DNA of 63,653 nt, the filler included, from Reticulomyxa filosa (lineage: Eukaryota; Protista; Foraminifera): the NCBI GenBank assembly GCA_000512085.1. It is 14 parts of 14 records of this genome, joined end to end, with 100 filler letters (N's around TTAATTAATTAA, not from the genome) between each part and the next. Parts side by side here need not be neighbours in the genome. Positions count along the whole stretch, not along the records: positions 42,564 to 48,126 come from ASPP01034136.1; 13 more parts are not named here. The stretch is one strand, 5' to 3'. Below are positions 206-48,226 of this stretch, in pieces (position 1 is the stretch's first letter; every line of letters starts with the position of its first letter). The notes below the pieces were generated by a model. That model had not been told where the DNA came from and made no database searches. It worked only from the letters and a program-made list of their open reading frames with translations. Position numbers and translations under genes: made by a program.

Positions 206-2673
206 TCAGCATGTGCTTTGTATTGTTCTCAAGCCCAACTGTCGAACACGATGGGACATCGCCATTGCTCCGCCAAAAATGTGACTCTTTTGTAGACCAT
301 TGTTATCACTTTGACTAAAAAAAATGTAATTAATACATATACACACATGCATATACATATATATATGTATATGTAATATCAAAACTGGTAACAAGATTAG
401 TCATAAAGTCGTGTGCATAAGACCACAATATCTTTTCACAAAAAGCGACACAGGCTCCGGACTTGCCCTCGCTTCTCATCACTGCACATCGTCGCAAAAC
501 TTCAAAGGCAGATATGACATTTGACGTTTGACTGTTGCATAAAAATACAAAAGCAAAAGTCCTAGCCATTGCAAACTCAATTTGTTTATTATTGAAAAAC
601 AAGTAACAATAGCGAAAAGGCAAAAACTGATTGGTAATTCGATGAACGCTCAGCTGATTCGAAGAAATATGCGATTGTTGAATGGGATGCTGACATTCGT
701 TGGTCTTTTTTTTTAGACGATTCCACGCACTGTACAAAACGCGTCTTGCACTTCCAGGGAGTTTAGCACGTTTGGATACAATTTGCAGCTTCGTTGGCAT
801 CCACATCCACATCCACATACACATACATGTATATACACGTATAAGTAAACATATACGTATAATTGTTGTAACAAGCACTCAGCCAAGTGAAGTGAACAGT
901 GTTGTTAGTGGTGCGTAACATACCTACCTACCTGATTGTTGGACGCCAAAATCAGGTCTGGCAGAGTCAAAATGCCTGAGTCTTGACACGAGTGCTTTAA
1001 AGTGTTGGCAAACGCCTTGGACGTTTTTTCAAACTCGAGTTCGTCGATCCAAACGTGTAAGGCCTCTTCACTTACTTGCGAGGGATGCGATAGCTGCGGG
1101 ACCTCCAACGACACTGCCTGCGTGTGATATTGAGAGCGTGAATGAGAATAGGAGTGTGCATGCAGATGAGAGTGTGCATGTTGATGTGCATGTGAGTGTG
1201 AATACGAATGCGAGTGCGAATGGGAATGAGAATGAGAATTAGAGTGCAAATGTGAATGCGATGGATGAAAATGAGATTGAAATGGAGAAGTGGATAACAT
1301 GGTAGAAGGTGTCGTTGGTGTATGCACATGCACTCGTTCTTTGTCAATCACTACTTGTTGCGAATTTGAATGTGTTGTATCATTTTTTTTATTGTTTTGA
1401 GTATCTTCACTCGATTGCTGATTTTTATCTGAAACCAACTGCGTCAATTCAAAAAAAAATAGTACACACATAAATACGTACATACAAAAGCATAGTGTGC
1501 TTACAATTTTTTTTTTAAAAAAAAGTAACGTGGCTAGTCTCTTGTAATGAATGTCTTGCAACATAATATTCGTGTCTATCGTTGGACTTTGCGATTGAAG
1601 CGTTGTCCATTTGTGCACATTGAAACGGCTCTTCGACGCAATTGTATGTCTCCTGGACCTCTCGATAGTCACTAGGACTTTGTCCACTTATTGCTATAAC
1701 TGCAGCTGCATGTACTTCCTTTGTATCCTTCCCTGTTTGCTCCGTTATCAAAATACTCGCTGTCTTTGATCCGTCGTTGCATCGTTCCGATTTCGATTGC
1801 ATCGATATCCCTTCATCTCCTGCTTCCATCGATTGCATTTCCGGCAACGATATCCTTTCCTTGCTTCCACTCACACTGCCTCTTTCATCCGCTTTGATAC
1901 CTTTCCATCCATTTATCATTTGTACATTTGACCCTTCTGCATGTCCATGTGTTCCTGTCATTCCATTACTTGGCTCTTCACTTATCATCGGCAGGGGAGG
2001 AACCATTTTTACACTGATATTTTTCTCTGCATCTGTCATTTTTTTTCCGTATACATATGCATATATTGGAGCATACGACAAGTAATTATTCATCTTTTTC
2101 TTTAGGGAAAAAAGTTCAAAGTCTCCCTTTTTTTAATATTCAGCAATGGTGTTGGAACAGTTTTAAAAAAGCAAACAGAGGTGTAATCCACACCAGAGAA
2201 TATTGAAGGAGAGAGCTGAGAAATGGAAGTGATGTGAGTGCTACGATGATGAGATGGTATAGTATCAATTGTCACAGAACTGCTATGACTGATTGTCAAT
2301 TCCTCAAAAAAGTGATCTTCATTACTACTTTTAACTTCATCATTGTCATGATGGGAACAATTAGTTGAAATATTTTTATCTAAAAAGTATTTTTTTGTAA
2401 TGTTTGCTTATTTACAAAGAAATATGCATATAATATACATATGCACATATAAAATCACCAACGTCCAAAACTGAGTAAATCATCACGTTTGATGTGTAAT
2501 GAGCAGATATTGATATTGACGAAAGGAGATTGTTGTGAAAGTGATGGATTGGCACATGGTTTTGTTTCATTATCGCTTTGTTCGTTACTATTCTTGTCTA
2601 CCACTGTATTCGTGTTATTTGATTCTCCATTATTCATTGCTATTTTTTTCGTTCCTGTCCCGAATCCGTTCAT
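206..2673 (-). CDS. Multi-exon hypothetical protein with a His/Ser-rich tract and a possible SAM-like domain; start uncertain
   Basis: Several minus-strand coding-like ORFs (2455-2676, 1515-2093, 905-1687, 330-878, 206-394) are separated by AT/CA-rich intron-like segments. HSHSHS tract at about 1130-1270. LHVWIDELEF...GILTLPDLILASNNQ / LQIVSKRAKLPGSARRVLYSAWNRL resembles a SAM helical bundle. Confidence 0.45.
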
Positions 2674-3424
2674 CACTGTTTTATTGTTATTATTACACCT
2701 TTTTTTTTATCATCATTTGCAAATTCTCAAAAAAACAAAAAGTTCATTTCGCTGTGCTTAAGAAAAAGTTTGAGTCATGAGGACACAGTAGAGGAAAAAA
2801 AAAACAAAGATTGCTGGAGCCAACAATTCTATCCAGAATACATGCTTTTGTCAAACATATTGGCTTGTATTTACGCGGCAGGATGTAAAGTGCATCAAAC
2901 TTTGTGCAAGATATCGCCTTTCTTTTTCCAGGGGGAGGAGAGAAAAGGGGTAGTGAGGACCTGAAAACGCCAAGATTTTGGAATTATATATTTCGCTACG
3001 ATAACCTAAGATTTGACAAAAATAGATATCTCAAAGCTTTGCAAGCTAGAATATCTCAATAAATTATAAAAGCTCACACCAGGCTATGCTCCTTTGTGTC
3101 CTCGTTCGTAGTAACTAACACTTCCTTGCAGTTTTGCTAAGATGACAGTTTTCACGTTTTTGTTTAAGATTTAATAACAGTGAATTGAATTGTTAACTTT
3201 GATAGAAGAAAAATAGTAAACGAGTTTTAATTTATAAGTTTGATTACAACAAAAAAAAAATACACCAAGAGACATTGTAAAAAACGTTGATTATTATCTG
3301 AAGAAATTTCAAAAAAGACGGAAAAAACAGACAGAATGCACTAAAAAAAAGGAAATCACAGCACAGAAATAACGTCATATTTGTGTAAAGATTTGATAAA
3401 ATTTTCACAATTTTGCTCTAAACA

Positions 3425-5590
3425 ATGACAAGAGAGCTGGGCTATTCTTTCGGGAATCCTCAAAATGAGGTGATATCAGGACATCTTGTGCTGTCAAACA
3501 ACCAGCAGTCGAGCTGTAATGTTGCAATAATCGATATCCCGCCAAAACTGACAATGATAGAAGTGTGTGACTTTATGGGAAAGTCGATAGTGGCAAGCAA
3601 CATAACGCATTTACAAGTGATGAGCCAAACGCAAGAGTCGACAAACAATTACTGTGTGTTAATCCACTTTGAACACGAGTCATATGCGGAAGAGTTTTAC
3701 GGAGCATTGAATGGCAAGCCTTTTAATACGTTGGAAATCGATTTGCGTTGTCAGATTTATTACGTATTGGAGTGTATGATCGACAATATCGCGACACATT
3801 ACTCGTACCGTCCTAAGCCATTGACACCAAAGTCGGTAATGAAGCCAATGGAAACAGGAATGAGTCAAGATAAGGCCAACGAGATGAAATCGAGTGAGAA
3901 TCAATGTGTTGCGTCTGTGAGTGCATTGGAATCCTTGCCACTTGACACTAGCAATAATAACAATAATAATAATAATAATAATAATATGAAAAATGTATTA
4001 TCTATTAACAAAACCAAAATGAAGAAACTTGTATTCCCACCCATTCTTAACAATACTTTGCATTGTCAGACGAGTAATCCAAACACAACGACGACTATCA
4101 ATGTGAGTACAATTGTGAATGATGATACCAATAATATTCCGAATTGTGTATTTTGCTTTGAATTGGTATTACCGCCTTGTGTCCATGACACTATGAAAGG
4201 AAATCAACCGCCACTTGCAAAAGTGCAACACAAACATTCCAGTTCATCACAGCAACAGCAACAGCAATTGGATTCAAATGCCAAAGTTAGCATTGGCAAC
4301 GAGGTATCAACGCGTAATTCGGTGAAATGGTATGAAAGGTCGAATAGTGTGATCATTGTGCTGTGCTATCATGTGTTCCATGTAAAATGTTTTATGCAAT
4401 CGAAAAACAATGCGTGTCCGATTTGTCGACATGTGATGTTCCCAGAAGATTGTAGCTGCTGTGAGGACTGCGGACGATTCACCAAAGACCTGTGGATGTG
4501 TCTGGTTTGTGGACACATTGGATGTGGACGTCAGCAGCAATCACAATGCGCAGCCAAACACTTTGAAAAAACAGGACACAGCTACGCCAAAAACGTCTTG
4601 GAAAGCAGCAAAGTGTGGGACTACATTAGCGACGACTACGTATATCGCATGATGCAAAACACGGAGGATGGCAAATTAGTGGCTTTGCAAACCAGCAGTT
4701 GGGACGGTATTGATGGAATGCACAAGCATTTAAGCACAAACATGGACATGTGGTCCAGCTTCAAACAAGAAAATATGATCTTTGAATACAACTTTTTGCT
4801 TACTAAACAATTAGAAGATTTACAAAGCTATCATAAGTCTCGAGTATTTTTTATACAAAAAACATAACAAGTCTTTTGATTACATTTTCACATTTCTTAT
4901 AAACACATACACACGAAATAGTTGGCTCGAGTTTGCGACTTTGGCGAACAGAGAATGGAGGATTTAGAAAAAAAAGAAAAAGGAATATTGGAATTGATCG
5001 CCTCCAAAAAAACACAATTGAAAAATCGCTTTGACAATGCCAGTCGTCTGAAAGAGTCCATTACAAATGAAACAAAAACTGAAAATGAAAATGACAATGA
5101 CAGTGAAAATAAAAAGGAAAACGAAAATGCAAATGAAAATAACAAACATTTGAAACACAACGAACAAATTGAAGTGTTGGATGACGCTTCCTTTTTGTTA
5201 GGTCGATTGGAAAATGAAAAAAAACAACACGAAAAACTCAAAATGTTACATCACAACTTGTTAAAAGATCAAAGAAATTGGAATAAATCCATCGAAGAAT
5301 TCAAAGAACAATTACGACATGGACTAAGTGTCAATGAACAAATGCTAAATGTCAAGTTGGCCCAATTACAAGAGGAGTGGAGAGATATCAGTACTCATTT
5401 GAAAACACAACAAAAATGTAAAGCCTCTATGAAAGACGAGGAAATTGATAATGCCTCTTTTCGATTACAACAAGGAAAATCAAAAAATAATTATAAAAGA
5501 GATTTAAAACAAAAGGGAATTTCAGGAAAAAAACATAAAAAACAAAATAAAAAATTAAATAAAAATCCAAAAAGTTCTGAAGATAAATGA
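3425..5590 (+). CDS. BRAP: BRAP2/ETP1-like E3 ubiquitin ligase (BRAP2 domain, RING-H2, zf-UBP, coiled coil); 2 exons, about 695 aa
   Basis: BRAP2 domain NYCVLIHFEHESYAEEFYGALNGKPFNTLE. RING CVFC...LCYHVFHVKC...CPICR. zf-UBP CEDC...LWMCLVCGHIGCGR...HFEKTGH...VWDYISDDYV. A phase-0 GT-AG intron at 4844-4921 joins the two ORFs in frame. Confidence 0.9.
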
Positions 5591-10524: not shown

Positions 10525-10986
10525 ATGCATGGTGTAAAAAAAAGTGATTTGACACCAGAGCGGTTGGAGCAAATTCAAAAGAATGTTGCCAAATATAAAA
10601 AATGGAATATCTTTATTCTTGAGCAAGTAAAAAGTAAATTTGCAGTTTTTTGGTTTAAAAAAAAGACAAATAAATAAAAATAAACAAAAGAAAAAGAAGA
10701 AAGTGTACACAAAAGAGATATTGGAAAACTGTGATCAAATATTGAGCATAAACTCAGAGCATTACACAGTTTGGAATTACCGTCGAGAAGTGCTGCTTCA
10801 TCTTATTTGCACAAGGGCAAGTTATATATGTATGTATTGAAGGTTCAAAAAAAAATTTTTCATTTCAGCACAAAGAGATTTTGGAGAGAAAAAGGAATAT
10901 AATTGAAACACTTGTAATTCAGAGCAGAACGAAAGCCGTTGCTGTATCATGAATTAGAGACCATAGAAAAAACATTAGCTCGCAAT
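10525..10986 (+). CDS. RABGGTA: Rab geranylgeranyltransferase alpha subunit (BET4/RABGGTA), 5' part; truncated by the contig end
   Basis: Starts MHGVKK (family N-terminus is MHG-x-K). Prenyltransferase-alpha repeats ILSINSEHYTVWNYRREVL and ELETIEKTLARN. Phase-0 intron at 10627-10690. Confidence 0.85.
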
Positions 10987-11963
10987 NNNNNNNNNNNNNN
11001 NNNNNNNNNNNNNNNNNNNNNNNNNNNNNNTTAATTAATTAANNNNNNNNNNNNNNNNNNNNNNNNNNNNNNNNNNNNNNNNNNNNACTGTAATACGAGA
11101 GGTGTTTACTAAGAAGAGAATATTGATTTCGTAAAACAAAAGAAATTGAAATAATAAAACAAGGTAACAAAAGAAAAGTGAATAGAATCAAGAAAGTAAG
11201 AAGTAAGTTTGTTGATGAAGTTTAACCTACTGTTGATTCCTCCGTTCACTTGACGTTCAGATACTCATAATATGGACTTGCCATACACTTTTTCAAATTT
11301 TTTCAATAACTTTTGATTTTTTTGCCTTTGTAATTTTATTTTTATTGTTTACTAATATTTGCAATATTAATTTTATTAGCTTTGTATAGTTTTCTTCAAA
11401 CTAATTCATTATTTATTTGCCTTATTGCATGCATTATATGAAGTCTTTCTAATTGAAATTCTAAGGAAAAAAGAAATTTAAATATAAAAACTACAATATT
11501 TGTATATATTTTTTAAATGGTATAAACTTTCGTGTTATGTAAACATATTGATGCAAGCGGTTTTAATAAAGCTTTCACACTCATATTTATAACTTCTATT
11601 GAAAATGATTTATCAAGTGCAATACATAGAATTTTCATATTTACCAATTTTGCATTAAAGTCTTAGCCGTGTAGTTGCGTATTGAATAATATTCAATAGC
11701 CTATCATTGTATAGGAAAAAACGAGTGTGCGAGCGCTAATCCAAAGCAACAATACAGTATCGTACGTTGAACAAGGGTCCTTACGGAAAAAAATTATACG
11801 CAAGTTGCGTAGAATATTTGCTCAGCTGCAAAGATATAATAAAAGATACTTATACTGACGTGTAGTAGAAATGCGAAACAAATTGTCATCAAATGTATTT
11901 GGGTTAGTGTGAGAAGGGAACGAATGCACGCGCGCAGCGTGTAGAAGAGTTTTTTTTTTTTGG

Positions 11964-14900
11964 ATGCAACAAGGAATTATGACAAATGTATACTCATGTG
12001 ATGACCAAACTACAACTTGTAACAGGAACAAGAATATTCTAAGATCAATAGATCTGATGTGCGTGTTTGCGACTGGGATTATATTTTTCGCAATGTCAAT
12101 GGTGGTATTTACCTCGACGCATTTGTTTGTGACATCAGTATATTCGAGCAAACTGCATGCTCCATTTGAAGTAACAGTAGAATCGTTGCAGACGCAAATG
12201 ACTATGAAGTTTGCCAAGTATTCGCCAGTGATCCAGAACGCATGTAAGAGCTATTTTTCAAAGAGATTAGCATCGCGATTGTTGCTGGAATCACTTTCAG
12301 TGGAAAGCAATTTTTTGAAAAACAACACATCGCGGATCAAAGCACGTATCCCTGTATCGCCACCGCTGCAATGCACAGTACACAGTCCAGACCACATGAA
12401 AAGGTTTGATAACGCATTTGCGTATTTGTCTTTTCACGAGAGCATGTCAATGAATAACGGTACATTGATATTCAATTTCCTGACACCAGCAAATGAGTAC
12501 TTTGACGAAAACGAAGTGGTGATTATTTCCGTCCATGACGACGACAAGTCGAAGAACGTTACACACGTTCAATCTGAAACACAAATAAAAAACAAACAAA
12601 ACATTGTTTTCCAAGCAAAGAAAACGAGACGAGAAATAGAAGCATTGGAGAACGAAATGACCACAAATTTATGCCAAAAAAGATTTTTATGTGTGCTGCG
12701 TGATCATCAACTTGTGTCGCCATCATCGAACAGCAAAAGATTGGAACCTTTGATTTTTTTCAGCAAACCCATTGAAAGCCAATGCCAAAGTCTCAGTCCT
12801 TCATCGATGTCTCCTGTCATTGTGTATTGTGACATGCTGGATGAGTGGACCCTGGCCTATTACTCGCATCATCATCACGCCGGAAATGACGACGATGTGA
12901 ACGACTATCTGCTGTCGTATTTGAATCAAGTCCAACATTACAGTAACGCCATCCTACAAAGTGGCGAGGAGACCCGAGTCACTCTTGAGCTATTTGACAT
13001 CCGACCTGTCGAGTATCTACAACAATTGGGTCTTTCCAATATCAATATCAATGCCAATACCAATAAATGGCTCTTTTGGTCGAGTGGGGCTGTGCGGCCT
13101 GTCTGCAGCACTTTTTTGGTCAACCAAAAACAATTGCACAGACATGACCCACCTCTGTGGCTTCCCTCAACTAACACCCTTTGGAACACACATGCAACAG
13201 CAGCGGCCAAAAGACAGGCGCAAACACCAACGCCGTCTCGAAAATATCTCATTTCCGCTTGTGTCATGGTGCATCCAATTCATAAACGTAATCGTCAGCT
13301 TTCTCAGCTTCTGCTCAATTGGATTGAATTCCATCATTGGATTGGTTCGTGTCTTTTTTTAGTCGCAAAAAAAAATTTCATACTCTTTTTGTTTTCGCTT
13401 TTATATATATACATACATACATATATATTTTATTATTATTTATTTATTTTTATATTTATACTGACAAAATACAATTTATTTATTTATTTTTTTTTTGTAT
13501 AGGTATTGAACATTTTTATGTGTACGATCACACGGGCGGTACGTATCCTGATGATTTTACCGTTTGGGACACGTTGCTAAGCAATGGGTACGTTGAGAAT
13601 GAATTGGTAACTTATGTGGACTGGAATGTAAAGGAATTTAAACAGAATGGTTTATCACATCGCCTCGCTCAGATGAACACATGCTTGAAACGCTTCCAGT
13701 TTGAATCGCAATATATTGTTATCTTGGACTTGCAAGAATTCTTATTTGCGGGCATGAAAACGATCGAAATGGACGAAAATCCATCCGTTGGGACTGACGA
13801 AAGAGGAGAGAATACCAATGCATTGGAAACAAAAATTAAAAAAATATATCGATACTCACTGGCCAATGCAATGAACCACATCCAACAACGGCACTCGTCG
13901 TATGTGAGCTATTATGTCGTTCACAAGCATCAAGGCTTACCTTGTCGCAATCTCTTGGCAAAAACGAACAAAGCAATTTCGTGCAACCAAACCTATCCTT
14001 CGTATCTGGACAAATATCGATGCACACGCAACACTCCAAGCAAATACGACATATTTATCACTGACCCATTGTTCATACACTCGTCATCGCTACATCTTGT
14101 CCACATTCATAACGATTTGCTGATGTATCGTTTCATGCTCACTGATGGCACACAAATTGGATGGAATGGAAACGAAACCAACAGATTTTGGCTCAAAAAT
14201 GAAAATCTTTCGCAAGGGGCTGAAAAACGAAATGAGTCCGAACATGTCGTCCAAATATTTTTCTGTACGTTAATTACGTTTTTTGTTTGTGGTTTGTTTG
14301 ACCGATAAGATCACACTGGGGAAATTCCACTTGGGGAATTGTATACGTACAGACAATGGTGGTAATTCCTTGCATTGTATTGACACAACCGACGAGAAGG
14401 ATGACCTGATTCGTCGAGAAGAGAAAATTCTGGAACCACCAGTTGTAGGCAATATGCTGGATGAATTCCACGACTTTATACAAAAAAATATCCGAAAAAA
14501 CTTGACAATTCATGAGCAGTTGAATGCGAGTACAACACATTGTCAAAAAGAGAAGAGAAAAACGGAAGTGGTGACATCGAACAGTGGCGATCTGTCTGAT
14601 ATGCAAAACATTCAAAAAACATTGTTCCATTATTTGTGGTACTTTATAAATGTTAATGGCCGCAAAGACAGAAAAGAAAACAAGTTTACTGATAAATTTG
14701 TCAAGTTTGTCAATTTAAGCCAAACCATTGCAAAGAGTATCCCATTGCACTGGAACACACTGCGGAATTCCAAAAACGTGCCAGGTACCGATTTCGACCT
14801 GGAATATGTAAAGATGCGAGAAATGCGAAGGACGTGGATGATCATTGAGCAATTTTACTTTGAAAAACGTTTGCTAAGTGTTGAAGATACATATCAAAAA

Positions 14901-42065: not shown

Positions 42066-42841
42066 CTAGCATGTATACGTAAATGCAAAACATTATTTTT
42101 TCGCACAAAAAAACAAATAAAATAAACTATTGGCTTATAGCAAGTGCGTCTTCATTATTTTTTGTTATATCTTTTATTTGTTCAGTTAGTTTGATATCAA
42201 CAGATTAAGTATTTGTTAAATAAATAATTTGATAATTTTAATTGTCAAAATCATAAGTTGTCATAACAACTTGTATACAGATCCTTGAAAACACTTTTCT
42301 GTTAATATATTTCGAAAAAAAAACTCATGATTCAGATAACATAGATAATTTTTTTTATAATGATACTTCTACATATTCACAAATTCAACAATTTGCTAAT
42401 TATTTCAACATATATTATTTTACTTAAACTTTATGTATCCTCAATTTCACTTTTCTATATAATNNNNNNNNNNNNNNNNNNNNNNNNNNNNNNNNNNNNN
42501 NNNNNNNTTAATTAATTAANNNNNNNNNNNNNNNNNNNNNNNNNNNNNNNNNNNNNNNNNNNNCTCAATTTCCCGTTAACCTATAAAACATGATTTTTTC
42601 ATAGTACACTGACTGTAAAATGATATACTCATAGATTGGAAAAAGGGCACCCTCTTGGCCTTAAATACTGAATTAATTTATGGTGCGCTTAATGCGCGCA
42701 AAACGCAAAGAAAATGGCCAAACCCTAAAGAACCCACACCCACTTGAGGCACATCGGGTATAGAGGTAGGTGGCTATACTCAATGCCTTCCCCGAGATGA
42801 AAAAATTTACACAAAAATTATTTCTCGCCAGTTTTGAAAAA

Positions 42842-43393
42842 TTATTGACAATGTGTGCAAAATGCAAGCGCGTTGCCTTTTTGTGGGGCAATGCTGATAG
42901 CACCGAAAACTTCGTTTTTGGCGTTCTGGAGGTCTCTACCTTCCTTATGTGATAACACTTCGGCTATCTTGTTGAAAACGTTGACTGCTTGCTGGTGCCA
43001 GGCGCCTGCTACTTCCGCGATTAATGGAACGTATGATGAGTTGGAATTGGCGAATAATGTTCTATATTTCCCTATCTTGAATCTTGAGTATTCGTCTGCC
43101 GCCCTTAATCTTCCTGCTTCTTGGTTGGTGATATTCTTATGGGTTACTCCGATATCGAAATAAGTTTGCTCACTGTCGTCGAACCATTTAATCATGATAT
43201 CCCCAGGTCTTTGACTGCTATTACCACTGGCCCGAACTTCCCGTTTATGATTCAATCCCGCACGCTTTAATAGGTTTGAGATGCATGAGGTGATTAAATC
43301 ATGACGGTGGATTCTGCCCTTACCGGATGGACATATCAACGCGTGGTCTCCTAGTTGGTCCATATGTGAAGTACAACCTGGGCCACATAACAT
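42842..43393 (-). pseudogene. CCHC knuckle and PD-(D/E)xK restriction-like endonuclease of the element
   Basis: CGPGC...DHALIC...RIHRHD...RPGDI...FDIGV...KIGKY...PLIAEVAGAW. Confidence 0.9.
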
Positions 43394-44106
43394 TTATCGT
43401 CTGCCGTTACTGGTTGCGACAGTCGGAACCGGATTAATGCTTGATATTCTTTGTTATCGAAGTGGGACTTGTTAAATTTATTCGGAAGCGCGTACAAGTA
43501 TGACGATGAGTGCTTGGCTTCTAAAGATGACAGGAGTGCTCTTGATCTTGGATTACAGTTACTAAGGAACCTTTTAGTATATTCGAGATGCTCTTGGATA
43601 AAAATGCTTGCTCCGGTAGAATGTTCAAGTCGATTATGTTGTCGTGGTCTGGTGTCCTCGAATTATAATCGTGAATCGCATTGTCCATTTCGATGGACGA
43701 CGTCCAACTAACGTTTTTGAATGTCGTATGTGAATTGATGGTAATAACCTTGATGCTGTTAATGCGGAAGCAATGAATGCGGCGCCAGCGTATGGAAGAG
43801 CTGTCCTTAAGCCGAGGCCACCTTGACGGATCGGGAGCTGACACTGGGTCCATTGTTGGTCGGTGATCGGGTGTGCGGTAATTGTTTCCATTGTTTGCTT
43901 CGTCTTGTCGTCGAATTTTTTCATCCAACCAGAGCCATAACCTGCAAAGTTCGATCGGATGAAGTAATTAACCTTTGATAGCTGCATCGAATTACGTAGC
44001 AAGAGGAGCATTGTTTGTGAATGCCTGAGTGCCATGATCTTGTCAAACTGCAATGACCACTCCTTTTGTCTATCCTCCATTTCATGGTGAACATGAGAGA
44101 CTTTCC

Positions 44107-44928
44107 CTATCGGGATGCTGACCAATGTTGTATCGTATGTGGTGTTATGTGTGATACCGATGAATTGAATTGGTGGTGGGGTAGCCCAATTTGATAACCA
44201 TTCCGTTTGGAATATTTGATTTCGATCCCATGCGAGTCTCTGAGGGCTTCTAGTGATGTCAAGGCCAATGTTAATGAAGCTGACGATGGTGACGCCATTG
44301 TGAGGTCGTCATGGTACGCTGCGTGGTATACATTGTCTAACCCGGAAAGTGCCGACTTTAATGCATCTGCAAGGACTATGGCGAACAATGCGCCACCTAG
44401 GGGGTCACCTTGGTGTACCCCCGCACAAGATTGGATTGTTGAGCGGCTTGGCAGGAATAACGGAACATGTGATGAATAGCATCCCTTAACATAACCATAT
44501 AATTCCGGAATTTGACCTCTGATTAATCGTAGTACCTTTGCGCGTTTGCACGAATTAAACGCATTCTTGAAATCCACCTTTATAGCAACTGCATCTTGCA
44601 TTGGCCGTATGTGTTGTAAGATTGCTTTAAACCCGTGCACGAATAATTCAATTCCCGCTTTCACATTAATTCCAAATTGGTTGTGTCCGACTATCGTCTT
44701 GATTTTGTCTGCGTGTCGTTTCATTAGGATAGTCCCTGCGGACCTCCTCAATAGTGACCCGATTGCAATAGGCCTGGGGCTGCCATCTGGTTTTGAGATA
44801 CCGATCAGTCTGGCTCCGTATGCCACATGGGTGGCATCACTACAAACGGTTCCTTTTATGATCAACGTAATAACTTTGGCCCAACTTGTCAGTGTCCCAG
44901 ATTCGAATTCGTATGGCGCGATATCCAT
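44107..44928 (-). pseudogene. Reverse transcriptase domain of the element
   Basis: RPIAIGSLLRR, DFKNAFN, QGDPL, and YHDD at 44305-44316; frameshifted at both ends. Confidence 0.93.
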
Positions 44929-45053
44929 TAAATGTTGTGCTGCGAAGAGGTCAACCCCCCAGCAGATGTTCTTCCAAGCCTTCTGATATAAGTGGTTATT
45001 TCGTCCGTCGATATGGGTTCCATTAATGGGATGGGGGCTATCCTATGTGATCT

Positions 45054-47144
45054 CTAATCTCTATCAATCGCTTGTAATATGGAAGCGGGCAATGGCTCGT
45101 ATGGATGTTTCTCTCGTAGTTGCTTGAATGTATCGTCGTTGTATAATACCGTTTGGCTAGGCGTTAAAGCTTTGAATGCCTTCGATAGCTCCCCCAATGC
45201 TGCCAGTTTAATTGCCTTGGCGTGAGTAGCATTTGTTCTTGCGATAGATGACAATTTTATTGGTCTTGGTTTATTCGGTGTTGGTAATGCGATTGAATGC
45301 TCGTAAAAATCATCCCATAATTTTTTAATATTACCTTCCCTCCATAACTTGGTTCTATTTATAACGCTGTTAGCAATCGAGTTGGCGTGCTTGGTTCCCC
45401 CCCTGCCTGGGTCCCATAAAATAAGACGGGTTAGCGATACCCATTTGGTCCATGCCGAAATATCGTTGTTATCTGCGATATCACGGAGCGCCCATGCGGT
45501 AATTGAAGCAAATGCGGCACGAGCGGCCTTCGGGACCCGGTCAATGATCTTTGCAGGCATGTTAATAATATCTTCGATTGCAGGCAATTGCCAAGGCACC
45601 ACTTCTTCCGACTTATGCTCAGTAGGCCGATGTGATCTTGATACATTATCACGACACTCTTCTTGTTGTCGAATCCATTCTTCGTGACATTTTCTGTGCA
45701 TATTATCAACAGCAACAGAAATTGGTAGGCTGCGATTGCACCGACAGCATAAAGCCCTTCCAAAAGCTTGGAAGTACGTTTGTGGGACTTGGCCTTTTGA
45801 GTGATTAGCGATATGCCCATTAACGTGGAGGTGCAAGCCTGCCTGTGTTTTGAGAGACGCATTACAACCGAAAACAGGATACTGGAATGTGCTTTGCGTG
45901 GGCTGCGAAGGAGCTGGAGGGTGCATGGGTGAGCTTGGTGGCGGTATTACAATATTATTGAATAATTCATCATGCTCGAATGAATGCTGGGATGGAGGAT
46001 GTTGGGTGTCGGTGTTGTCTTGTGGCTCCGAATCGCCATTGCTTGGAGCTCGTGTCATTTGGGCGTTGAATGACTCCACATTGTTATAACGCATCTGATG
46101 TTCGTCGGGGTCCTGGTCTCCGCCGATTAGTTCGCCATGGTGGAACATCGTGACCTGTGAAGAACGGATGGAGTCTTCTTTGATATCGAGGTTGCCGGTG
46201 TTGTCCTGAACCCTTTGAGGTGTTGTTACGACCTGCGGTGTCAAAATGTCTGGTATGGGTCGACAGTATTGATTGGTTTCCGGTGCTTGTTGGGGTGCGT
46301 GTACGGTAACGTGGTGGGATGAATGCACTTGGATCGGTTGAAGAGTTTCTTGTGGTGGCTCACTTCCATGCTTTGGCTTATTTGCATGTGGTGTATTGAG
46401 TGCGGGGGTTGATAATGCCCCAGATGGTGATGAATTGCATGCAATAATGGATGGCTCTTTGTGCGGGATGACGACGTATGAAATATCAGCTGCGAACAGG
46501 AGGGTATCATTGGTATGGGATGCTGCATTAATGGCCGGATTAATAGCAAATAAAATGGAAAGGTTTGATGTTTTTGTCAAACATGATAGCAATGCCTTCC
46601 TCCATTCACTACAACCACGTTGTTGACGATAATTAACCTTGAATTTGCTGTAATTCTTTATTATATCTTTGAATTGTTTTAACATTAGTGCGTTACAAGA
46701 TGATTCCAAACTAAGGAGATTCTCCACACGAGTATGGATTTGGTTTTTTGAATTTAAAAAGGGGAATGGTACATTACTTGAAGACTCACACACTAAATCA
46801 AAAAGAAAAATATTGCTTTTCATTTGCAGCATTTGCACGCCGTTCTTGATATGATTTTGACAAATTGCGATATCGTATATTGTGTGCCCGTGGATTGATT
46901 GGTATCCATATGTTTGGTTTCGCTCTGGGTTTTGTGGATGAAGATGGGATGCATTTTTAATATCAATTAATAAAATCTCGATATCAATGCTGTTGCCAAT
47001 GACTCTCTCTGATAGCTTTGAAAGATTGATGGAAGAATAGCCTTTCTTTTGATGATTGGATGAGGCTTGCGTGTTGCATGTATCCAATAAATCAAATACA
47101 CGAATTTTGGAAGGATTCGTTCCGTAATATTCCCTCGCAGACAC
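45054..47144 (-). CDS. Retroelement polyprotein N-terminal part: kinesin-motor-like domain, Pro/Gln/His linker, Zn fingers, pre-RT region
   Basis: 696 uninterrupted codons. The first ~220 aa follow kinesin motif order; the C-terminal part has GELSKAFKAL...TFKQLREKHP, typical of the pre-RT region of RLE elements. Confidence 0.75.
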   Translation of the reverse strand: MSAREYYGTNPSKIRVFDLLDTCNTQASSNHQKKGYSSINLSKLSERVIGNSIDIEILLIDIKNASHLHPQNPERNQTYGYQSIHGHTIYDIAICQNHIKNGVQMLQMKSNIFLFDLVCESSSNVPFPFLNSKNQIHTRVENLLSLESSCNALMLKQFKDIIKNYSKFKVNYRQQRGCSEWRKALLSCLTKTSNLSILFAINPAINAASHTNDTLLFAADISYVVIPHKEPSIIACNSSPSGALSTPALNTPHANKPKHGSEPPQETLQPIQVHSSHHVTVHAPQQAPETNQYCRPIPDILTPQVVTTPQRVQDNTGNLDIKEDSIRSSQVTMFHHGELIGGDQDPDEHQMRYNNVESFNAQMTRAPSNGDSEPQDNTDTQHPPSQHSFEHDELFNNIVIPPPSSPMHPPAPSQPTQSTFQYPVFGCNASLKTQAGLHLHVNGHIANHSKGQVPQTYFQAFGRALCCRCNRSLPISVAVDNMHRKCHEEWIRQQEECRDNVSRSHRPTEHKSEEVVPWQLPAIEDIINMPAKIIDRVPKAARAAFASITAWALRDIADNNDISAWTKWVSLTRLILWDPGRGGTKHANSIANSVINRTKLWREGNIKKLWDDFYEHSIALPTPNKPRPIKLSSIARTNATHAKAIKLAALGELSKAFKALTPSQTVLYNDDTFKQLREKHPYEPLPASILQAIDRD

Positions 47145-48226
47145 TTTTATTACTGGACTGCCACCTTGCTATCCGAATTGACTGCTATGTTCGTGAGCTT
47201 CGCGTTTGAAGGAGGTTGGAAGGTGTCGCAGTCAGCATCTGCTGTATATGTCATACAGGATGCCCGCGGGTCCGCCAACTCCTCGGTGAATTGAAGCTTG
47301 TCGCCTATCCCCGATGTTGGATGTGAGCATCCCATCGATGTTGCTTGTGAGGGGTGGCGCGCCGCTGTTGTTCGCAGGAGGCCTGCTCTAATATAATATA
47401 ATGTTGTGTTGCCGACTGCATGATGGTAACAAGAGGCAGGCTACGCTGAAGGTCAAAGTTAGGCTGTGTTGCATAGACTGGTTCGACTTGGCCGATGTCG
47501 AATTTCGGGGTTGAACACGGGGTTGATATGTCGTCGTCGACTGGAACAATGCTGTCAGGTTCTAAGGCGCGGGTTACATCTGGAACAAATACCTTCGCCA
47601 CTTCTTTTATCTGGATCTTTTTGTCTTTCGCATCACAGCGCGCCTCTGCGATAGCATTTGATCGATTCGGTCCCTACGACTACGTATTTGGGGGCTTTGC
47701 GTTTTTGAGTCTTTGTCACGACTGGTGCTATTCATAAAACGAGAATTTGTGTTTCTGGAGGGGAGCTTTTTAATAGCCAGATTTGGGACCCCAGCCCGGT
47801 CCATGTCTGAGCCAACGGGACTTATCTCGTAGTGGACGTGCTCAGTAGGACCCGACGTCTCATTCTCACCACACTCATTGTCTTTGCCTCTAGGCGCCTC
47901 CGGGCTCGGCAGTACATGTTGATGGTTCGATTTCGACAAATAGCAAGGCTAAATTCAGTCGATGTATTCTATTATTTGTCGAATCCTTAAAATCAACTTT
48001 ATATAATTAAATTTTTTCTTTATTATTTGCAGAAAACAAAATTTGAATATTCAATAATATAATTTTTGAAATAATTAAATTTTAATTATCATAATTAGAA
48101 AAAAGCAAAATTGAAGATACATAAAGNNNNNNNNNNNNNNNNNNNNNNNNNNNNNNNNNNNNNNNNNNNNTTAATTAATTAANNNNNNNNNNNNNNNNNN
48201 NNNNNNNNNNNNNNNNNNNNNNNNNN

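Follow-up and report, generated by a model that had tools for sequence, protein, structure and literature searches.

A kinesin-derived domain in an R2-like retrotransposon of the foraminifer Reticulomyxa filosa

The genome of the foraminifer Reticulomyxa filosa contains a retrotransposon whose protein includes a domain related to the motor domain of kinesins. Here, we describe a copy of this element located in a 63,653-nucleotide stretch of R. filosa DNA (hereafter, the window) joined from parts of assembly GCA_000512085.1. Specifically, the piece analyzed spans window positions 42564-48126 and corresponds to the 5563-bp contig ASPP01034136.1. Its coding signal lies entirely on the minus strand. 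There, an open reading frame (ORF) of 696 aa extends over 45054-47144, and its first ~235 codons derive from a kinesin motor domain, of which they cover the C-terminal half. The translation then proceeds through a linker rich in Pro, Gln, and His and a C2H2 zinc finger (ZnF) into the region that precedes the reverse transcriptase (RT). An earlier inspection of the same DNA, the sequence-only reading, had proposed both this 696-codon frame and this order of parts, and both were recovered. The RT fragment lies in a frame other than that of the 696-codon ORF owing to a 1-nt deletion. The window copy starts inside the tail of an upstream ORF1, and several decayed copies of the element are present. 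Close relatives of the window protein all reside on R. filosa GCA_000512085.1 contigs. We compared the window copy with those on ASPP01025516.1 (L004), ASPP01029371.1 (L002, gene model RFI_32957), and ASPP01018238.1 (L001), with a sister element (L008, gene model RFI_30218), and with ENA ERZ25039484 contig_74177 (L003), a 16-kb metagenome contig (1-16081) from an assembly unrelated to that of R. filosa.

The element belongs to a known class. In a profile search, the nearest solved relatives of its RT were R2 retrotransposon proteins (E 5e-22). The C-terminal domain has the layout CCHC/RH/E/PGD/D/K, and the alignment of the restriction-like endonuclease (RLE) region has invariant C45, H61, C65, R74, H75, E96, D125, K151, and K154. 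With an AlphaFold model of the L004 RLE homolog, the top seven Foldseek matches in the PDB were R2 proteins (E 3.5e-6 to 6.7e-5), followed weakly by Prp8. No Pfam scan yielded a match to the apurinic/apyrimidinic (AP) endonuclease family Exo_endo_phos. L004 and L002 possess the C2H2 finger, which has degenerated in the window copy; UniRef names the relatives P0011 and P0016 "C2H2-type domain-containing protein." The combination of an R2-like RT and an RLE, with no AP endonuclease, identifies an RLE-type, R2-like retrotransposon lacking long terminal repeats (non-LTR). What the piece contains is thus a defective R. filosa copy of an element of this type. The assignment to the RLE type made in the sequence-only reading is borne out by the RVT_1 match, the CCHC motif and RLE domain, the R2 best matches, and the lack of an AP endonuclease.

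Homology of the N-terminal region to kinesins emerges from profiles and from sister copies, both of which were needed to detect it on the window copy. The Pfam Kinesin profile PF00225 aligns residues 16-221 of the window ORF collinearly with profile positions 138-324 of 327 (E 0.003, 17.1 bits). This score falls below the gathering cut-off of 29.3 bits because half of the kinesin domain has been deleted from the window copy. Sister copies exceed the cut-off: P0011 (RFI_29435) scores 40.6 bits, P0002 (RFI_20893) 31.8, and P0006, a protein from L003, 87.7. In P0011, Pfam finds RVT_1 in the same protein as the kinesin match. A phmmer search of 1.8 billion representative proteins with the 240-aa kinesin-like stretch of the window copy found true kinesins, with the metatranscriptome protein P0005 at 4e-8; P0006, P0007 from the foraminifer Bolivina argentea (EukProt), and a second metatranscriptome protein, P0008, matched more weakly. 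In a phmmer search against PDB sequences, the same stretch retrieved no kinesin, only a chance repeat match; a profile search of the PDB adds to the evidence for kinesin homology. The intact L004 domain was modeled by AlphaFold with pLDDT 73.8 and pTM 0.80, and the top 50 Foldseek matches of this model in the PDB are all kinesin motors (E ~1e-17, TM 0.6-0.75). The AlphaFold alignment included true kinesins, so the fold match is supportive and not independent. ESM Atlas look-alikes were generic RVT_1 clusters only, none with kinesin. The modeling indicates that the intact L004 domain keeps the alpha/beta core fold of kinesins.

These matches agree with the kinesin-like N-terminal region that had been proposed by eye; specifically, the collinear PF00225 alignment and the phmmer matches support the region, and the Pfam scores of the sister copies together with the Foldseek ranking support the fold. 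Alignment with true kinesins likewise confirms the proposed motif pairings at beta4 (VIKVSAREYYG...FDLL), switch I (QSIHGHT with SSRGHT), switch II (FDLVCES with DLAGSE), and beta8-alpha6 (SILFAINP...TLLFAADI). The pairing of HTRVE with QTRxEG was misplaced, being off by ~8 residues from the aligned LESSC/LEAGC motif.

The sequence-only reading had also located a P-loop at 47220-47270, with one frameshift upstream of the long frame. Neither proposal survives comparison with intact copies. The segment at 47222-47273 encodes instead a conserved peptide (consensus DP.xSC..YTADA..DT) that lies outside the kinesin domain. It shares 81% nucleotide identity with L002 3541-3592, a segment that follows the ATG (3539) with which the ORF2 frame starts, and in L004 (592-643) the peptide reads DPWVSCMTYTADADSDT and precedes kinesin strand beta1 by ~50 aa; across intact copies, the distance is about 50-60 residues. 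We therefore rejected the candidate P-loop. We likewise rejected the idea that the conserved 52-nt stretch is an RNA motif, since it is explained as a coding peptide; an Rfam scan of the piece, L001, and L002 produced nothing, or chance snoRNA-like matches (E 0.2-0.4). The real lesion is a deletion. Window 47209-47154 corresponds to L004 737-792, and from window 47154 on, the sequence matches L004 1177 onward. The 385 nt of L004 792-1176 are missing from the window, with the breakpoint at ~47154, and with them beta1 to alpha2 and the P-loop position are gone. Consequently, the 696-codon frame begins mid-domain. The remaining kinesin half holds beta4, L8, alpha3, a dead switch I, beta6-7, a dead switch II, alpha4, L12, alpha5, beta8, and alpha6. 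Relative to L004, the window copy has also acquired a premature stop and at least seven additional indels that shift the frame, and the first zinc-finger Cys is replaced by Tyr (FQYPVFGC versus FQCPVFGC in L004). Judged from these lesions, the window copy is a dead deletion derivative. It does not represent a working example of the element, as had been supposed, given its deletion, stop codon, frameshifts, and mutated zinc-finger Cys.

Other copies carry the kinesin domain in the same place. The order kinesin, ZnF/pre-RT, RT, RLE is found in L002, L004, the window copy, and three copies on L003. L004, which is 89% identical to the window copy in DNA over the whole element, has a single open frame of 1828 codons that runs through all domains: an ORF1-like tail, the conserved peptide, a full kinesin-like domain (aa 271-622), the linker, the C2H2 finger, the pre-RT region, the RT, and the RLE. 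L002 has only ~48-52% protein identity but the same domain order, and 1379 codons of its ORF2 can be read without interruption before the contig ends. L002 also possesses an ORF1 (315-3644) specifying 1103 aa that are low in complexity, rich in Ser, Thr, Pro, and Gln, and without a family match. The end of ORF1 overlaps the ORF2 frame (3527-3650), and the candidate start codons there are the ATGs at 3539 and 3641, the second in the form of an ATGA overlapping the ORF1 stop. Because the ORF1-type tail is fused in frame with ORF2 in L004, and ORF1 is separate and overlapping in L002, the two lineages would express the kinesin-RT protein differently. L001 carries the kinesin domain, linker, and ZnF, and a further contig, L007, begins within the homologous linker.

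The three copies on L003 show the same domain order in both orientations, one copy being inverted. In copy B, a 5' truncation falls within the kinesin domain, which is what one would expect if the kinesin sequence belongs to the reverse-transcribed RNA. The L003 kinesin domains are much closer to host kinesins than those of R. filosa, with 45% identity to P0005. A homology search with the ZnF region of P0006 returned only proteins of the same contig. L003 contains no ORF1-like gene; an unrelated Lys/Glu-rich ORF of 511 codons lies at 10919-12451. Taken as a set, the copies indicate that the kinesin domain is part of the retrotransposed unit, in which it sits between the conserved N-terminal peptide and the disordered linker. 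Two checks set out in the sequence-only reading thus came out in its favor: the fusion is shared by L004, L002, and L001 in R. filosa and by three copies on L003, and independent contigs of two assemblies show the same arrangement.

Comparison of the window copy with L004, with the reading frame of L004 as guide, provides evidence for selection on the domain. The C-terminal kinesin half has a dN/dS of 0.13 (233 codons; Sd 45.5, Nd 29.5; p 9e-14 versus neutrality), far under the 0.42 of the adjoining linker (Fisher p 0.007 for the difference). The ORF1 tail has 0.45, the ZnF/pre-RT region 0.17, the RT 0.05, the thumb/linker region at 43394-44125 0.13, and the RLE 0.06. Among the L003 copies, the kinesin part has values of 0.24-0.31. 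These ratios, which the earlier reading had called for, show that purifying selection has maintained the kinesin domain in lineages with only ~50% identity, as it has the remaining functional regions of the protein.

What selection keeps seems not to be motor activity, at least in R. filosa. The canonical motifs are GxxxxGK[ST] (GQTGSGKT) for the P-loop, SSRSH for switch I, and DxxGSE for switch II. At the P-loop position, L004 and L001 read YGHHPIVNSS and L002 reads YGQLLAPG; in the window copy, the position is deleted. Switch I, SSRGH in the L003 copies and P0006, is QSIHGH (window) or SPPSGH (L002) in R. filosa. Similarly, switch II is DCAGSE in the L003 copies and P0006 and is DLVCE (DLVCES in the window) or NLVGE (NLVGET in L002) in R. 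filosa. With all three motifs destroyed, no ATP-driven motor is expected in the R. filosa lineages, and motif content would exclude ATP-driven motility for their domain. On L003, the P-loop reads GQTGSGKT in copy A and GQMGSGKT in copy C; with all three ATPase motifs in place, this related element may encode an active motor. Between L004 and L002, the best-kept segments are alpha5 (9/9), L8/beta5 (29/43), and L12 (9/16), and the least-kept are the P-loop (3/14) and switch II/L11 (4/17). In kinesins, L8, L12, alpha4, and alpha5 constitute the tubulin interface. Since the tubulin-facing segments are the best conserved, the R. filosa domain is most likely a nucleotide-independent binder of microtubules or tubulin. 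This conservation pattern agrees with the proposal in the sequence-only reading that the ATPase motifs are dead while the microtubule-facing half is kept.

Table 1. Features of the window copy, listed in the direction of transcription; positions are those of the window
Feature	Position	Strand	Basis or remark
AT-rich sequence 5' of the element copy	47940-48126		Composition; genomic flank (copy 5'-truncated within ORF1) or 5'-UTR-like region
Low-complexity ORF1 tail, frameshifted remnant upstream of ORF2	47274-47939	-	Three broken frames
Conserved N-terminal peptide of ORF2, DPRASCMTYTADADCDT	47222-47273	-	Outside kinesin domain
Deletion breakpoint, 385 nt lost relative to L004	47153-47155	-	Alignment and indel table
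Kinesin-like domain, C-terminal half	46440-47168	-	PF00225, phmmer, alignment with true kinesins
Pro/Gln/His/Ser-rich linker, presumably disordered	45987-46439	-	Without family match (Pfam)
ZnF and pre-RT (N-terminal extension) region	45057-45986	-	52-53% aa identity to P0003
C2H2 zinc finger, degenerate	45813-45887	-	ORF translations
Premature stop codon closing the 696-codon frame	45054-45056	-	Intact relative L004 continues (…IDRDERSH…)
Reverse transcriptase domain, AYHDD	44107-44928	-	Pfam RVT_1 7e-17
Region between RT and endonuclease (thumb/linker), several frameshifts	43394-44125	-	ORF fragments, frameshift list versus L004
C-terminal CCHC motif and RLE	42842-43393	-	Invariant columns; R2-matching model of L004 homolog
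3' untranslated region (UTR), ends at contig end	42564-42841	-	Sequence

The remaining features of the window copy are collected in Table 1. The AT-rich sequence at its 5' side shows weak similarity to AT-rich L002 87-181 (local score 56; shuffle mean 27, maximum 49). Broken frames span 47940-47170 on the minus strand; in the ORF1 tail, window 47909-47667 matches L002 2610-2852 (tblastx), and similarity to L004 1-658 is 85-89% (blastn). The window linker is unalignable with that of L002, which is about twice as long. The ZnF/pre-RT region is common to the kinesin-less relatives P0012-16 and to P0006, and the RT is 95% identical in aa to that of L004. In the 3' UTR, 42624-42689 is 97% identical to L004 5603-5668. 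A ~60-nt stretch of the window 3' UTR (42690-42750) has no counterpart in L004, and the UTR flanking it is 97% identical. At the other end of the element, positions 1-330 of L002 comprise about nine GCCCTAA telomere-like repeats, then ~270 nt of AT-rich DNA, and then the ORF1 start. The 5' end of the element in L002 thus faces a possible chromosome end, recalling telomere-associated retrotransposons, in this single case. This array is the sole hint of a specific target site.

The donor of the domain appears to be a divergent clade of N-type kinesins that foraminifera share. Specifically, the element-borne domains group with a divergent clade of kinesins with N-terminal motors (P0005, P0007, and P0008), and not with kinesin-13, the family that the sequence-only reading had favored. 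We rejected the kinesin-13 affinity: among PDB entries, this clade comes closest to kinesin-1 and kinesin-5, and then at no better than ~1e-28. Residues 501-563 of P0007 form a second, partial motor repeat (P-loop to beta4) at the C-terminal end of this host-type kinesin, which may have arisen by tandem duplication or by misjoining of transcripts. Within R. filosa, the sister elements P0012-14 and P0016 have homologous ZnF, pre-RT, RT, and RLE regions (42-49% identity) behind a low-complexity N-terminus, in which hhalign found no kinesin remnant. One of these, P0012 (RFI_30218, L008 98-5503), is an intact kinesin-less ORF of 1801 codons with an N-terminus of ~750 low-complexity aa where the other elements have kinesin. 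Four groups form a polytomy in the RT/ZnF tree: L003, the sisters without kinesin, P0016, and the kinesin-bearing elements of R. filosa. In the kinesin tree, the L003 domains fall weakly with Bolivina, and the AU test (p 0.12) does not reject monophyly of the domains carried by elements. Kinesin may have been captured once and then lost from some lineages, or captured twice.

The explanation we favor, and regard as moderately probable, is that an RLE-type retrotransposon carries a kinesin domain that is maintained by selection, is ATPase-dead in R. filosa, and serves as a microtubule tether for the ribonucleoprotein (RNP) of the element. The notion is that the domain would bind microtubules or tubulin independently of nucleotide and, once bound, would tether the protein-RNA complex to the microtubules of the giant multinucleate cell, whose network is very active. 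Such tethering could help the complex to spread to nuclei or to stay near them. Several observations weigh against this explanation or the material on which it is built. The contigs end before the 3' end of the element, and accordingly they show neither poly(A) nor a target-site duplication nor an insertion polymorphism. The true kinesins in the AlphaFold alignment may have drawn the model toward the kinesin fold. Mapping of the microtubule face derives from alignment position and general knowledge of kinesins, and the host kinesin clade itself does not have the canonical HIPYR motif in L12. Finally, L001 (1-2297) is a mosaic: its kinesin and linker part (1-1425) is 91-96% identical to L004, and its ZnF/pre-RT part (1425-2297) is 97% identical to L007 and only 67% to L004. 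Either subfamilies recombined at the linker/ZnF border or the short-read assembly is chimeric there; as the latter may be so, the assembly is not flawless.

The chief competitor, distinctly less probable in our estimation and still to be taken seriously, holds that the kinesin-derived domain is selected for another job: docking on a host kinesin or partner, acting as a scaffold for folding or oligomerization, binding RNA, or serving as a decoy against a host factor. The loss of the ATPase motifs from a fold kept under selection would suit such a role, as would the disorder of the linker and surroundings, which is typical of interaction hubs. However, the best-conserved segments, L8, L12, and alpha5 (9/9), are those that contact tubulin in kinesins, and metagenome relatives with a complete ATPase site fit an ancestral motor or microtubule role. 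We consider it improbable that the copies constitute a multi-copy host gene family encoding a domesticated RT-kinesin protein and no mobile element. The long open frames under purifying selection and the lack of a target-site duplication, poly(A) tail, or insertion polymorphism on these short contigs are what such a family would show. Against it stand the many diverged copies in varied states of decay, including the window copy with its nonsense codon, 385-nt deletion, and frameshifts; the 5' truncation of L003 copy B and the occurrence, on a single contig of 16 kb, of three copies that differ in orientation; the retention of catalytic RT (YHDD) and RLE residues; and the intact kinesin-less sister element in the same genome. 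A shade more improbable still is a neutral passenger, that is, a functionless host exon gained by transduction or template switching. LINE-type elements do pick up host sequence, and the destruction of the ATPase motifs in R. filosa would be natural for a passenger, but the dN/dS of 0.13 against the adjoining linker (Fisher p 0.007), frames that stay open in lineages ~50% identical, and conservation that follows structural elements all speak for function. Last, a one-off event, in which a retrotransposon inserted into a kinesin pseudogene or contigs were joined in error, could account for a window copy that alone is below the Pfam cut-off and broken upstream, and L001 demonstrates that mosaics occur in the R. 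filosa assembly. We find this hardly credible: four R. filosa contigs share the junction and the order of parts, both of which recur three times on a contig from another assembly and organism, and recurrence on independent contigs excludes both a pseudogene insertion and a chimeric contig.

Building on the microtubule-tether explanation, we offer, more tentatively, a wider proposal. Possibly, a lineage of retrotransposons of foraminifera and their relatives encodes its own cytoskeletal module that moves or anchors the RNP on the microtubules of giant multinucleate cells, probably as an active motor in L003 and as an ATPase-dead binder in R. filosa, and the published expansion of kinesin domains in R. 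filosa partly consists of retrotransposon copies. To reach nuclei, viruses and mobile elements as a rule hitch onto motors of the host via short adaptor motifs. A kinesin domain in the element's own polyprotein offers a testable case of transport on microtubules by a retrotransposon in a centimeter-scale syncytium. Moreover, the series from ATPase-intact (L003) to dead but conserved (R. filosa) can show what the kinesin fold is kept for.

There are also consequences for genome annotation. The GenBank models RFI_20893, RFI_29435, and RFI_32957 are retrotransposon copies, and Pfam counts the first two as kinesin. Kinesin-domain censuses of R. filosa may therefore be inflated. The deposited models treat the copies as spliced host genes, with in-frame stretches removed as "introns"; for example, an 84-nt segment of L002 (3965-4050) so removed encodes the dead P-loop region. 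R. filosa is reported to have amplified kinesin-domain genes, according to a passage in PMC4758236 that cites this finding, and the amplification mentioned there may in part reflect retrotransposon copies.

A full-text literature search with kinesin and retrotransposon terms found nothing relevant; one with Reticulomyxa and retrotransposon or RT terms, which the R. filosa genome paper lay outside, likewise found nothing relevant. The element class is known. To our knowledge, no kinesin motor domain has been described in any mobile element before, and the accessory domain is new in this respect.

Comparison with known systems places the element in context. Like R2Bm and R2Tg, it combines an RT with a C-terminal CCHC motif and PD-(D/E)xK-type nuclease, an N-terminal C2H2 finger, and a pre-RT extension. 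Unlike in R2 elements, the part ahead of the zinc finger comprises a kinesin-derived domain of ~350 aa and a long disordered linker, the L002 lineage has a separate low-complexity ORF1 of 1103 aa that overlaps ORF2, and no rDNA or other specific target is seen, the flanks being short. With the N-type kinesin clade (P0005, P0007, P0008), the domain is collinear over the whole motor core, its predicted fold is alike, and the signatures SA.E.YG…FDL, KKG, LE.GC, and …LF..SP…TL.FA are shared. The R. filosa element domain differs from this clade in its replaced ATPase motifs, and in place of a coiled-coil stalk, the disordered linker and RT come next. Comparable in principle are the motor-homology domains of Vik1 and Cik1 and other nucleotide-free or rigor kinesin-like domains, in which the kinesin fold has likewise outlasted a functional nucleotide site; that of Vik1 still binds microtubules. 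Vik1 and Cik1, however, are host proteins that pair with the catalytic kinesin Kar3 via a coiled coil, whereas the domain of the element forms one protein with a reverse transcriptase. Finally, non-LTR elements have gained accessory domains in other instances, specifically, esterase and PHD domains in the ORF1 of CR1/L2-type elements, RNase H, and, in some elements, cysteine proteases. As in those elements, a host-derived domain was evidently added, kept by selection in one sub-lineage, and absent from sister elements; in none of those reported is the added domain a cytoskeletal motor.

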